Positions 1,700 through 6,671 of a stretch of DNA of 64,000 bases are shown here, one piece after another. A program made the translations under genes and the position numbers. The stretch is taken from NCBI RefSeq assembly GCF_041956535.1, contig NW_027192193.1:1045192-1109191 (forward strand). Reading direction: 5' to 3'. The first letter of the stretch is position 1, and the number at the start of each line of letters is the position of its first letter. The notes under the pieces are model-generated. The model did no database searches, was not told the origin of the DNA, and was given only the letters and a program-made list of their open reading frames with translations. Source of the stretch: Calcarisporiella thermophila CBS 279.70. Lineage: Eukaryota; Fungi; Calcarisporiellomycota.

Positions 1700-3699
1700 A
1701 TGTCGCTCAAGGTAAGTCCAGTAACAATGGACATTGTCGCTCGGACCTATGTGCTTATCAACCTATGCTGCCTTTAATATAGTACGAGATAGAAACATGG
1801 CACGAAGCTGTGGTGGCCTTTGAGAACAAAGACTATGAAAAGTCGATCGAGATATTTAGTGTAAGGACGGATAGATATCCTATTGTTTGCAACCTTCTCT
1901 CAATCCCAGCCCTTCCTCTAGAGTATTGCAGGCCATAGCAAGATATTTTTCAACATAGGATTGATTCTCTCCAACATGAACCAACTGGAGGAAGCGGTAA
2001 ATCAAATACGGACGCTAAGCAAATTGCGTCGATGTATTCTTACAAGTCTATTGTCTTGTTTTCCCTCGTGCTTAGGTATTGTGGTTCAACAATGCAGTCG
2101 AGCTTGATCAGTACCATGCCATTGCGCAATTCCAGCTCGGTATCACCTATTACCTATTGGGTAACATGATTGAGGCAGAGCGCTTCTTCGACATTGCGCT
2201 CCATGTGATGCGCGGAAACACTTGCATCGATTACACTCAGCTGGGGCTTAATCACAAATTGTACACATGTGAAGTGATCTTCAATCGGGGCCTCACCAGG
2301 CTGAACAGAGGCGACTTCGCAGGGGGAATGGATGATCTGCGCTATGCGCAGCTAAATAAGGAGACGGAAGAGCATGAAATCATCGACAGAGCGCTCGAGA
2401 ATGAAGGACTCGTAAGTCTTTTCTATTGGGCCATCTCTGAATTTACTAAAACTCTCTTTTTTAATGTTGCATAGGGATTTACAGTAATATCCATTCCACC
2501 CGGAAAGTTGTACCGTCCCCCCGAGTATAAGGTCAAAAACACTAAAAGGGTGGATTATCTGGGCAATGCTCAGGTCATTGCAAACATCGACGAAGGAGAC
2601 ACCACCACTGGATTCCAACCACAGAAGCCCAGCGAGCTTAATAGCAACAATATAACTATTGAGGATGGGCCATTCGGCAAATCCGCGATCCTCCCGCCTA
2701 GTGATCAGGATGCAGTATCCGCATTCGCCGAAGAAAAGTGCAGCCCAAATGCTCTATTGCTCTCGCGGGCTAACACGGTGCACACCCTACCCTCTCTCGC
2801 TAAAAAACCCATGGTTGAAACCTCTGAGCTGAAGCGCCTCAAGACAGTGGCGGGTGTGACCACCGTCAGGCAGGATACGTTTGGGATGAGCCGTCCTCCG
2901 CCGCCACGGGATCATGGCTCCTTGAAGGACGCCTTTAGCTCGCTCTCGCTCAACGATTCCCTTCCACAACGCACCACCTCTATGGGCAAGAATCACAACC
3001 TGATCCGCCAAAATACCCTTCCACCCTCCTTCTCCTCCCGTGCTCTACTCTATCGCCAGAACACTATGCCCAACATGAAGAAATCGCCTCTCAAAGACTT
3101 GTATTCTACTAGCCGAAACGGCGCAGATCACGATGGGAGTGTACAGGACCTATACACACAACCCAAGTCGTTGGGTATGGATGACTATACCAATAACTAC
3201 AACCAAGTCGAACATGAGAGTTTCTCCGAACCTAACGATGACTATTTCCCGTACATACCCCCTCAACCGCCGCAAATTGGTTTGCAAAGAAGACCACCGC
3301 TCGGTTTGGAACGAGAAGTCTCCCTTCGCTCTTTGCGTTCGATAAATATCGAAGGAAAGGTAGGCGACAATTTTTATTCTCCTTATGATCACTCTGGTTA
3401 CAATGAATTTCTCTTTTTTTTTTTGCATGTATCTATTTTAGACCAGAGTGAAATGCTATCTCCAGTCTGAGCCAGACACAGCGCGTGCTTTCCTACTGGA
3501 TGATGAGGCAACCTTTGCTGACCTCGTTACACTAATTCAAAAGAAGTTTAATACTACTTCCACGCCTTTGATAAAATATCGCGATGATGAGGGCGAATTG
3601 GTGTTAATAGTGGATGACTCTGATTTACTGCTGGCGAGGAATGTCGCAGTGGAAATGTATGGCGGCGTCAAGCTGGAGCTGTTTATCTCAATTGACTGA
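1700..3699 (+). CDS. noxR: NADPH oxidase regulator NoxR (p67phox-like; TPR + PB1)
   Basis: MSLK|YEIETWHEAV start; TPR region with MRGNTCIDYTQLGLNHKLYTCEVIFNRGL; YRPPEYKVKNTKRVDYLGNAQVI; C-terminal PB1 IKYRDDEGELVLIVDDSDL; several introns. Confidence 0.92.
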
Positions 3700-4284
3700 A
3701 AGTGACGGAAGGATTTAGATAGAACCTGCATCAAATACATTGATTTCCCTTCTCTCTCACCCCCTCCTTATTTACCTGGACTAACCTTCCTATATTCGTT
3801 ATTGCAAGTGCTGGACGCTTGCCTTCGAGAGGAGATTTGCTCCACTCAAATAATTTCGCACATTGTATATGACCTTTTTATCCTCTAATATATTTATTAG
3901 CGCCAAAACAAATCCCTCCCGCCCCTAATTAAGCCGGCGGAAGGTTTAGCTGAAAGCGACTCTCGAATGATAAGAGATCGAGGAACACGGGGAACCCTTT
4001 GAAAATTGAATTATCACCGTTTTCAAAGTATAATGGTCAACAGGTTGAATGCATCTTGGTATTCAAATGTTAAAGGGAGAGCAGAATAAAAAAAAACGAT
4101 ACAGGAAAAATTAGTAGGTTTAATATTGAAAAGACATTGTACATGGAAAGAGGTATTAGAACTATATCGAAATCAAGGCGAGGTATTAGATTTATAGCCG
4201 CCCCTTCATCACCCTTGCTCTCGATGACTAAAGTAGGGCTATATCTATGGCCCTCGAAGTCGCAATATAATACAATCCGACTGT

Positions 4285-5129
4285 TTAGCCTTGTCCCTCA
4301 AGCTCGGATTGAACAAACTGTGGTGGCCCTCCAAACAACTCCTCCTCTACTTCATCTATTTTACGCTCAATTATTTTGGATCCAAGCGGAACCCGATTGC
4401 GCCGTAAGGGCTCATTTTCGTCTGGCACAGGCGGAGGGGCCATTGGCAATAGGAGAGGTCCGCCAGGGGATTTCTGCTTGGGGGCCAGAGGCTGCCGCTT
4501 GACCGGCTCATTCTCATCACGGAAGATAGTCATTTTCCCATTTCCAACAGGGGCATTCTCATCGCGGAATATGGAGACATTCTCATCCCGAAATACTTGC
4601 AGTTTCTCGGCCGGTTTCCGTGAGGCACTCATGAAATTGGGTTGTTCGAACTGGTCAGCCTCCTCGTCTTCATCTTCATCTTCCGATGAGAACTGTTCGT
4701 GCTTGAGAGGCTGGTTAAAAATCTCCATGATATCCGCAAGGGCCGCCTTGGTGTTGATGGTAGGCGAGGAAATTCCACGGCTTAATTTACTCGATGCTAG
4801 CAGAAGTATGAAGAGATGAGCTTCAAAGAAGGGATGCTGAATCGCTGATTAGAACAATTACATTTCACCGGTGTGCTAGGTAATCCATTGATGGTCATAT
4901 CAAGCTCATCCTCCAATTTTATGTTGTTTTTCCTGGGCTCGTTGATTTCTTCGCGCAGAAGCGCAGCAGGTGGCTCCTCCTTGTAGCGGTATTGAGCAAG
5001 ACTAGCACGGAGCTCTTCGAGGCTATATTCAATGTCGTTAACATACACAAGTCGGGCATCGACTATCCAACGTTCGGGTCGGGCATGGGGCTGCTGGGTA
5101 GTTGGGACGGTGAAGGTTGCTTGGCTCAT
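4285..5129 (-). CDS. Truncated Bub1/Mad3-family protein (~259 aa; GLEBS + CD1 + ABBA-like motifs; no TPR, no kinase)
   Basis: Exons 5129-4862 and 4796-4285, intron 4861-4797 (GT-AG). EYSLEELRA is the Bub3-binding motif; SPTINTKAALADIMEIFNQPL is Bub1 CD1; FRDEN occurs three times. An alternative in-frame ATG lies at 5174. Confidence 0.75.
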
Positions 5130-5201
5130 GACTACGACGGAGCTGGAGTTGGATTTGAATGGACGTGAGCCCATAATATAACTCAATTTTGAAGCCACAG
5201 T

Positions 5202-5225
5202 ACGCGTGACGTATAATTAACGCGT
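5202..5225. promoter_or_regulatory. Two MCB (ACGCGT) cell-cycle boxes upstream of the mini-Bub1 gene
   Basis: ACGCGT at 5202-5207 and 5220-5225. Confidence 0.55.
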
Positions 5226-5430
5226 TTCTATTTTGTGAATATGGTGACTTTGCAAACATAACCCTATAATTTACTATTAGAGAGAGGGAAAGAGGGAGAG
5301 GGAAAGAATAAAGAGACGAAAAGAACAGAAAAGAAAAACTAAGGAAAGAGAACCCAAGTACAAAAAAAAAGTTAGATCAAAAGATATCACTGCTATTAAG
5401 CTTGCGCTGTAGATGATTGATTTGTATAAA

Positions 5431-6229
5431 CTATTCATCCTCATCATCAGGATCAGGTCCGAAGCGAGAGAAGTCGATCTTTTTACCACGCGTGCGCCTA
5501 GATCCCGTAATAATATTAGAGGTGTCGAGACCTTCAAGTTCGTTATCTTTATAGTTGGTGTAAAAAAAAAAATAAACAAGTGAGCAAGGATGAAGTGACA
5601 ACAATCGGTTCACGTACCAATATCGTCCTCGCTCTCCGATGGTTCATCCTCGCTTTCGTTCTTCTTTTTCTTCTTCTTCTATTAGAGGCGCATGATGTAT
5701 TCATCAGTCTCTCTGCTACAAAAAAATACACGGAGCCACACCAGGAGCATACCTCGGGCTGTTTTCCCTTTGCCTTGACATCCTTTTTCTTGGGGCGTCT
5801 CTCCTCTTCCTCCTCCTCCTCTTCCTCCGAAACGTCCTCGTCCTCTTGTTCCCCCTCTTCCTCTTCTGTGTTATCCATAACCAATTTTCAGTTTCAACTA
5901 TATCCACTAAGAAGGGCCCAAACAAATTGCCCAAACAAGCACTTACCAACTTCATCGTCTCCTACAATGAATCCATCATCTTCATACTCATCCAATCTAC
6001 CACTCCCACGGCGGCGTGGAGGGGATTCGGGCTCCCGCTTTGCAGGCACCTTTTCAACCGGCTTCGTCTTCTTCACTTCAGCTCTAATTTCGCAGGAATT
6101 TAGGTTATTCTGAAAAAACACTCGAGCAAGCAAAAATCTCTACTTTTTTGGCTGGGGTTTCTCTTGATCTTCGAGCTGCACCTTCCGTTTTGCCGCGAGC
6201 TCCGCTAGCTTTCTCTTCCGATCCGACAT
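5431..6229 (-). CDS. Acidic histone chaperone with C-terminal CHZ domain (Chz1/HIRIP3-like)
   Basis: MSDRKRKLAELAAKRK start, YEDDGFIVGDDE, E/D-rich tracts, final exon ELEGLDTSNIITGSRRTRGKKIDFS (CHZ motif). Confidence 0.75.
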
Positions 6230-6671
6230 GTTTATTAGTGTTTTACGTGTTTCCTGGATGCAAGCAACACGGACTTGAAGGATCTTGGAGAGCAAAAATT
6301 TTCTACCAAATCATGGTAATAAACTGCGCCGCCGATTGACGGGGAATGATGCTACAATTTCGAATCTTCGGCAAGTCAAATTCAAGCCTGTGATAGCCGC
6401 ACTTTGAGCCAGCTTTCATATACATATTTTTCTCTCGTGCACGAGCAAACTACCGCAGGGAAGCTCTACCTGAATCAGGTAAGAGTTTGAATGTATGAAT
6501 GTTTACAACATTGATGGTCCAAAAATCGAATGGAAGAGAAAGAATTCAAGTTTGAGTTGAGATTATGCTTCGAAGCAGTGCATTTCACTCATTGTAAAAA
6601 ATAAAAATAAAACTCCAACAAGTATGTGGACAAACTTAGAGAGTTTATTGTTGAAATGGGAAGAAGATCGT

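Follow-up and report, generated by a model that had tools for sequence, protein, structure and literature searches.

MadBub genes have subfunctionalised repeatedly and in parallel, a textbook example, and descriptions of the family make the TPR the one domain that every member keeps. The sequence-only reading that preceded this analysis stated the same rule, that MadBub paralogs normally keep the N-terminal TPR, which agrees with Tromer et al. A division of labour among three paralogs has been described in Arabidopsis, where BMF1, BMF2 and BMF3 share out the kinase, KEN/APC-C-inhibitor and Cdc20-recruiting scaffold roles, with a TPR in all three proteins and GLEBS in none (PMC10963012). In human cells the checkpoint is fully supported by a kinase-less Bub1 (residues 1-553), with an essential role for CD1 and a contribution from ABBA (PMC5472792). 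When the human BUB1 CD1 peptide is bound to Mad1 (7B1F), phospho-T461 contacts R617 of the Mad1 RLK motif; Cdk priming takes place at S459-P (PMC8391104).

The fungus Calcarisporiella thermophila represents a more extreme outcome. Its genome contains three MadBub-derived genes on three contigs (C2, the contig of the gene studied here, and C27), and the MadBub modules are spread over them as KEN1-TPR-ABBA-KEN2-ABBA, GLEBS-CD1-ABBAx3-D-box and GLEBS-kinase. Two of the three genes are TPR-less, and scaffold docking is isolated in a protein made of linear motifs only, which we call mini-Bub1. Like the Arabidopsis BMFs, these are three MadBub paralogs with a probable division of functions; unlike the BMFs, two of the three have lost the TPR and retain GLEBS. 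The two three-way splits are independent events. Mini-Bub1 also resembles human Bub1 1-553 in being kinase-less and in carrying GLEBS, CD1 and ABBA, but the human protein is engineered and still has its TPR, whereas mini-Bub1 is natural and smaller. A literature search for this three-gene arrangement found no description of it. The subfunctionalisation of MadBub is itself known; the three-way partition with two TPR-less members is a newly recognised arrangement.

Structure and surroundings of the mini-Bub1 gene

We mapped mini-Bub1 to the minus strand of the window, by which we mean the whole 64-kb stretch of DNA that was analysed. The gene and its promoter sites are as follows.

4285..5174, minus strand: mini-Bub1 gene, start to stop codon; 274 aa, equal to P0001 / VTP21DRAFT_7319
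4862..5174, minus strand: exon 1, 104 codons plus 1 nt; a second ATG (M16) lies at 5129
4797..4861, minus strand: intron of 65 nt, GT..AG, phase 1, directly after the TPVK codons
4285..4796, minus strand: exon 2, stop codon included; C-terminus ELEGQG
5202-5207 and 5220-5225, no strand assigned: two ACGCGT (MCB-type) sites, 18 bp apart, 28-51 nt before the mini-Bub1 ATG

Joining exon 1, the junction serine and exon 2 gives the database record P0001 (VTP21DRAFT_7319, deposited for C. thermophila), with which our model shares 100% identity; the exons were searched singly, and a word search with exon 2 retrieved this record. The product is 274 aa long from the first ATG (5174) and 259 aa from M16, and the two-exon gene of ~259 aa ending in ELEGQG that had been proposed from the sequence alone corresponds to the shorter form. 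Which start codon is chosen is irrelevant to the interpretation because every motif lies past residue 33. Transcription, the intron and the start codon are predicted from the deposited annotation and from a conserved intron position; a look for RNA sequencing runs over 3700-5700 listed none.

The neighbouring genes lie close by. Upstream and on the same strand, the last exon of a gene with a CHZ domain (Pfam E 2e-14) reaches 5431, leaving 257 nt to mini-Bub1. Downstream, a PB1-domain exon on the plus strand is convergent and stops at 3699, with 585 nt between it and the mini-Bub1 stop codon; the earlier reader assigned this gene to NoxR. These distances are close to the ~300 and ~590 nt first estimated and, with genes on both sides, there is no space for TPR or kinase exons at this locus. 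Searching the whole window with Bub1-specific TPR and kinase HMMs gave no match, and a CD1 HMM matched the CD1 alone.

The twin-MCB promoter noted by the sequence-only reading corresponds to the two ACGCGT sites listed above. The window contains 16 copies of ACGCGT versus 6.3 expected. Because KilA-N/APSES genes are present in the C. thermophila genome, an MBF-type reader of these sites is plausible.

As a separate observation, Calcarisporiella is placed in a phylum of its own.

Linear motifs shared with Bub1

We searched 1.84 billion representative proteins with HMMER and obtained 41 matches at E <= 0.001. Mini-Bub1, at 274 aa, is far shorter than these relatives, which are mostly 900-1500 aa long and match it with a stretch in mid-protein. 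About ten of the matches were scanned for domains. Six contained the Mad3/BUB1 TPR, GLEBS and kinase; among the others, P0018 had the TPR only, P0005 had TPR and GLEBS, P0008 and P0023 had GLEBS and kinase, and P0003, a partial CDS, had GLEBS only. Four proteins (P0002, P0008, P0017 and P0040) were considered as TPR-less relatives and rejected as ORF-calling artefacts, with TPR exons directly upstream of each.

The motifs of mini-Bub1 are listed in order along the protein.

5004..5078, minus strand: GLEBS / Bub3-binding motif, residues 33-57 (PERWIVDARLVYVNDIEYSLEELRA); Pfam PF08171, profile matches, AF2 pLDDT 85-94
4705..4767, minus strand: CD1/CMI Mad1-binding motif, residues 115-135 (SPTINTKAALADIMEIFNQPL); family-profile match to 7B1F_C
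4510..4602, minus strand: three ABBA motifs, residues 170-200, fitting [ILVM]-x-[ILV]-F-x-D
4375..4497, minus strand: two D-box-like R-x-P-L-[AG]-x-K motifs with PDENEP between them; from motif inspection and comparison with 43 sequences

All the motifs that the sequence-only reading had picked out were recovered. The GLEBS core, EYSLEELRA, occupies residues 49-57, and PF08171 (Mad3_BUB1_II) scores 24.8 bits on P0001, above its cut-off of 21. A six-frame search of the genome with PF08171 gave no match, even to mini-Bub1, because the motif is too short for such a search. The segment proposed to bind Mad1 is a CD1/CMI motif with full conservation, in which S115-P-T117 aligns with human BUB1 S459-P-T461. 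The three ABBA-like repeats (LQVFRDEN, 170-177; VSIFRDEN, 178-185; MTIFRDEN, 193-200), the further DEN (in PDENEP, 229-234) and the two RxxL motifs (RQPLAPK, 205-211; RVPLGSK, 239-245) follow between residues 170 and 245.

To compare these regions across the family, we built alignment A1 from P0001 and the GLEBS-CD1 regions of 19 relatives (20 sequences). Ten columns are invariant (E49, S115, P116, T117, I118, T120, K121, A123, D126 and F131), and all of them fall inside the GLEBS and CD1 of P0001. A profile made from A1 matched yeast Bub1 GLEBS in its structures with Bub3 (4BL0_B, E 1.6e-5; 2I3S_B), as well as human BubR1 GLEBS and yeast Mad3 GLEBS (2I3T_B). The same profile matched the human BUB1 CD1 peptide bound to the Mad1 C-terminal domain (7B1F_C, E 5e-5).

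Mini-Bub1 has GLEBS, CD1/CMI with its S-P-T and then ABBA in the identical order to human BUB1 and yeast Bub1. It differs from them in having no N-terminal Mad3/BUB1 TPR, no CDII, no kinase domain (the chain ends at residue 274) and no folded domain of any kind. A KEN box was looked for in P0001 and is absent, and the BubR1/Mad3-type cassette (KEN1, ABBA1-KEN2-ABBA2) is found in the C2 gene and not in mini-Bub1. Membership of the MadBub family is defined by a PF08311-type TPR, which mini-Bub1 does not have; the homology of its non-TPR parts indicates that it descends from this family all the same.

GLEBS, CD1 and the ABBA repeat exceed what is expected by chance; the two RxxL motifs, taken alone, are near chance. 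At least one ABBA motif follows CD1 in 33 of the 43 sequences compared (mini-Bub1 counted), and some of these carry as many as five. The longer form R-x-P-[LF]-[AG]-x-K occurs after the ABBA motifs in seven of the 43, namely six relatives and mini-Bub1 itself. Since the ABBA arrays and the D-box-like motif recur in full-length relatives, they are inherited and not special to mini-Bub1.

An AF2 model computed on A1 had a mean pLDDT of 59 and a pTM of 0.25. The prediction was confident only at residues ~31-70 (GLEBS) and ~111-135 (CD1, with a helix modelled at residues 120-131), and no secondary structure was predicted elsewhere. Because confidence is limited to GLEBS and CD1, the earlier description of a protein 'made only of linear motifs' is a fair one.

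MadBub modules on three contigs and in one gene

A search of the genome for other MadBub copies, as the sequence-only reading had advised, traced the TPR to a Mad3-like gene on C2 and the kinase to a gene on C27 that has no TPR. The C2 gene is the single PF08311 TPR locus in the 28-Mb genome. It encodes, in order, KEN1 (HQKENILPLRQGRSA), the TPR, ABBA1 (KISIFVDPD), KEN2 (RRKENRVEATQW) and ABBA2 (RIEVYRDE) and then stops. This gene model is our own reading, and our models of mini-Bub1 and the C27 gene agree with the deposited annotation. No GLEBS or CD1 was found within 5 kb downstream of the C2 gene. It lies at 1.25 Mb of a 1.57 Mb contig, after an HSP90-like gene (read by eye), and has an ACGCGT ~90 nt before its ATG. 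The C2 tail (GEEMSEAEMLIKNPF) was considered as a decayed GLEBS and rejected; it aligns to an L023 motif that lies upstream of GLEBS, and Pfam is blank there.

The C27 locus was found with the full-length relative P0011 as query. It is an intronless frame of 625 aa, deposited as VTP21DRAFT_6525 (P0046). P0046 begins with its own GLEBS, in which GEFSFEEIRA is identical to human BubR1 at 10/10 positions. Its pre-kinase region and Bub1-type kinase match P0011 residues 499-959 (E 3e-52), and HGD and DFG are present. On its 0.42-Mb contig the gene is at 0.34 Mb; ~0.4 kb upstream is a divergently transcribed gene, by eye a Vac14-like one, so that no room is left for a TPR. Its promoter was searched for ACGCGT and none was found. 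The kinase gene, too, is without a TPR and carries a GLEBS of its own, which makes this a three-way split and goes beyond the paralog first envisaged. Mini-Bub1 itself is at 1.05 Mb of its contig (C3), which is listed as 1.38 Mb for P0001, and it contains the only CD1 found in the genome. A stretch of P0046 (PTPSVITS...IWQ) was considered as a decayed CD1 and discarded: the HMM gave -3.5 bits elsewhere, and 79/300 shuffles did as well.

The closest recognisable relative is locus L023, on a 9.5-kb contig from a public run. This locus holds all modules in one gene of ~4 kb, in the order KEN1, TPR, ABBA1, KEN2, ABBA2, SETELLKNNPLKNF, GLEBS, intron, CD1, ABBA, CDII and kinase. The module order of such unduplicated fungal MadBub genes (L023, P0011) equals that of the three C. 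thermophila genes placed end to end, and mini-Bub1 is the middle segment, GLEBS to D-box, of the ancestral MadBub protein. In L023 the parts form a single gene, whereas in C. thermophila they are divided among three contigs and there are two copies of GLEBS. Identity between L023 and the C. thermophila proteins is 61% for the TPR (C2 gene) and 35% for the kinase (P0046), and the L023 CD1 matches that of mini-Bub1 at 22/22 residues.

Two further comparisons with L023 bear on the origin of mini-Bub1. The intron after TPVK plus one nucleotide is in the identical place and phase in both genes. This backs the splice call at 4797-4861, which had been made from the sequence alone and which the deposited model also contains, and it points to duplication or fission at the DNA level, not retroposition. 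In addition, the C2 gene stops 8 codons past SEAEMLIKNPFKNY, whose counterpart in L023 lies roughly 60 codons before the GLEBS core, so the C2 gene's end nearly complements the beginning of mini-Bub1.

The CD1 codons of mini-Bub1 and L023 differ at 10/22 positions, all of them synonymously, and the three FRDEN copies of mini-Bub1 show synonymous differences plus one V/I change. These data indicate purifying selection on the peptide motifs.

We then surveyed 19 CD1-bearing loci of other organisms (4 found earlier and 15 from a metagenome scan) with home-made TPR, kinase and CD1 HMMs. A TPR was present upstream on the same strand at 16/16 loci with enough DNA; the other three have <0.85 kb upstream. 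A kinase was present downstream at 15/15 loci with enough DNA, and in the other four the DNA runs out no more than 0.75 kb from CD1.

Proposed function, partners and competing explanations

We consider it probable that mini-Bub1 is a stand-alone, disordered Bub1 scaffold module, docked on Bub3 and engaging Mad1 and Cdc20, that arose by three-way MadBub subfunctionalisation. This is the interpretation that the sequence-only reading had put first, in which a MadBub paralog has subfunctionalised into a Bub3-docked scaffold for Mad1 and Cdc20, and it is supported by a complete gene, conserved motifs and missing domains that are present elsewhere in the genome. GLEBS would bind Bub3, which would dock on Mps1-phosphorylated MELT repeats of Knl1/Spc105 at unattached kinetochores. 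S115-P would be the Cdk priming site and T117 the Mps1 site, and phospho-T117 together with the CD1 helix would bind the RLK motif and the head of the Mad1 C-terminal domain. The ABBA and D-box-like motifs would hold Cdc20 beside Mad1-Mad2, so that Mad2-Cdc20 and the checkpoint complex could form. The C27 protein, through its own GLEBS, may separately supply the kinase function (H2A phosphorylation and shugoshin recruitment), and the GLEBS-less Mad3-like protein from C2 may supply APC/C inhibition. Mini-Bub1 would have originated when a MadBub gene was duplicated or split at the DNA level and its parts were then lost in a complementary way.

Bub1 can be targeted to kinetochores without its TPR-Knl1 contacts. 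In animals, Knl1 binding is owed in part to the Bub1 TPR; a TPR-less protein such as mini-Bub1 may localise more poorly. The scaffold reading fits the human-cell experiments, in which kinase-less Bub1 1-553 is sufficient, CD1 is essential and ABBA contributes (PMC5472792).

If mini-Bub1 is functional, it is a natural separation-of-function allele, and would show that no single chain has to combine Mad1 recruitment with kinase activity and APC/C inhibition. Our judgement is evenly balanced on a stronger proposal, that the checkpoint is run with MadBub over three polypeptides, that mini-Bub1 is the sole Mad1 receptor and kinetochore Cdc20 recruiter, and that the near-complementary C2 end and mini-Bub1 start reflect true fission rather than duplication and loss. 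Were the three-polypeptide reading true, mini-Bub1 would be a natural, thermophilic 'minimal Bub1' with neither TPR nor kinase in the same chain. It is also a small protein from a thermophile that could be used for reconstituting or imaging the Bub3-Bub1-Mad1-Cdc20 catalytic platform.

The candidate partners were sought in the same genome. Mad1 is encoded on contig C23; its RLK motif (MMRLKEV) is closely followed by an intron, beyond which the head domain is encoded. The genome also has an ortholog of Cdc20/Slp1 (E 7e-156 with S. pombe Slp1) and, as a gene of its own, Cdh1; four genes of the Cdc20/Fizzy family were found in all. Contig C18 carries a Bub3-like WD40 gene. By likeness to BUB3 it is a candidate Bub3, which is only a lead, and PDB and Atlas searches with this gene did not separate Bub3 from Rae1.

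We modelled the Cdc20 WD40 domain (residues 85-424, L026 frame) with P0001 residues 160-215, which contain the ABBA region. The complex scored 0.34 versus 0.01 for the best of three controls, which counts as weak support. Most passes at or below 0.60 are wrong, except for pairs that were likely beforehand. The runs agreed in at least 77% of contacts, with a partner pLDDT of at least 45. In calibration, 51/78 solved pairs and 2/108 mismatched pairs reached the mark; at scores of 0.60 or less only 5/78 solved pairs did so, and all 4 passing mismatches fell in this range. The pass may also come from ABBA-Cdc20 complexes that have been solved and that the predictor already knew.

The sequence-only reading had offered a second possibility, an inhibitor like Acm1 or Mes1, which are disordered proteins of ABBA and D-box type motifs that engage Cdc20/Cdh1. 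Mini-Bub1 would then be mainly a soluble APC/C-Cdc20/Cdh1 pseudosubstrate inhibitor or a Cdc20 sponge, with GLEBS and CD1 secondary. The shared motif types are dense in mini-Bub1, which packs two R-x-P-L-[AG]-x-K motifs and three ABBA motifs in tandem into 80 residues and has four DEN triplets; the predicted Cdc20 complex and the four Cdc20/Fizzy-family genes would also suit an inhibitor. We nevertheless judge this to be unlikely as the main role. The strongest conservation is in GLEBS and CD1, which an inhibitor does not need and which Acm1/Mes1 do not have, and the KEN box is missing. Mini-Bub1 is not homologous to Acm1/Mes1 and has no sequence similarity to them; the relatives of it that could be recognised proved, in each case examined, to be of the MadBub/Bub1 type. 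Finding ABBA arrays and the D-box-like motif downstream of CD1 is ordinary for full-length MadBub/Bub1 relatives, so pseudosubstrate inhibition is not needed to account for them; it may be a side activity.

The scaffold interpretation also has to be weighed against two explanations in which mini-Bub1 is not a complete, working gene. It could be a decaying, non-functional fragment (a pseudogene) left by MadBub duplication or rearrangement, whose open frame happened to survive. The short architecture is seen in one genome and one assembly, and a metagenome scan with P0001 alone for a close Calcarisporiella relative found none. However, the 274-codon frame is intact with a correctly phased, conserved intron, CD1 has stayed identical to that of L023 despite its synonymous codon differences while the TPR has fallen to 61%, and the ABBA copies differ almost only synonymously. 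Mini-Bub1 also holds the only CD1 found in a genome that retains a Mad1 with an RLK motif, and its ACGCGT pair lies directly before the ATG. We regard a pseudogene as very unlikely. The other explanation, that the model is incomplete and its TPR and kinase exons lie elsewhere (through distant or trans-splicing, or through mis-assembly over C2, C3 and C27), draws on the fact that the parts sit in one gene in most other organisms examined and on the near-complementary ends of the C2 gene and mini-Bub1 relative to L023. This seems to us highly improbable, given that all three genes are deep inside large contigs and bounded by unrelated genes, and that the deposited annotation has the same 274-aa and 625-aa models. 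Unlike the product of a simple split of one gene, the C27 protein also has its own GLEBS and its own start codon.

The Mad3-like and Bub1 kinase genes

Besides mini-Bub1, two MadBub-derived genes lie elsewhere in the C. thermophila genome.

C2:1253031-1254370 (L002 5032..6371), plus strand: Mad3-like gene, ~413 aa
C27:335128-337004 (L005 1480..3357), minus strand: Bub1 kinase gene VTP21DRAFT_6525, intronless 625-aa frame

The Mad3-like gene has a single intron (L002 5523-5620) and carries KEN1, TPR, ABBA1, KEN2 and ABBA2; GLEBS is absent from its ~413 aa. It stops 8 codons past the motif SEAEMLIKNPFKNY, whose counterpart in the closest relative is located upstream of GLEBS. One ACGCGT, an MCB-type promoter site, is found ~90 nt 5' of the ATG.

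VTP21DRAFT_6525 is without a TPR and begins at its N terminus with a GLEBS of its own (GEFSFEEIRA). At its C-terminal end is a kinase of the Bub1 type, in which both HGD and DFG are present. CD1 is absent from the 625-aa frame. A divergent neighbour, which we read by eye as Vac14-like, is located 0.4 kb upstream.

Outgroup and a database relative

We found a complete MadBub encoded by a single gene on a 9.5-kb contig (L023) from a public run, the source being a GC-rich fungal relative.

L023 4275..8253: complete single-gene MadBub

For each of the three MadBub-derived genes of C. thermophila, it was the best outgroup we found.

The annotated 562-aa protein P0005 of Basidiobolus meristosporus, a database relative of mini-Bub1, has TPR, GLEBS, CD1 and ABBA motifs, and the kinase domain is absent from it. 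Judging from this annotated model, P0005 may be another Bub1 scaffold without a kinase, this one with the TPR retained.

Bub3/Rae1- and Cdc20/Fizzy-family genes

C18:170900-172000 (L030): multi-exon WD40 gene, Bub3/Rae1 family
C7:1209955-1210824: Cdc20/Slp1 ortholog
C8:1108793-1109683: Cdh1/Fzr
C43:69618-70484: Cdc20/Fizzy-family WD40 gene
C26:322870-323845: Cdc20/Fizzy-family WD40 gene

The C18 gene, located through the pattern AFKCHR, is probably Bub3; with one exon as query, no further Bub3/Rae1-family member was detected in the genome at E <= 1e-6. The Cdc20/Fizzy family of WD40 genes has four members, Cdc20/Slp1 and Cdh1/Fzr among them.

The CHZ neighbour of mini-Bub1

Window 5431-6300, minus strand: multi-exon CHZ gene, upstream neighbour of mini-Bub1

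This gene encodes a very acidic product, and its last exon holds both the CHZ histone-chaperone motif (Pfam E 2e-14) and an ACGCGT at 5488-5493.
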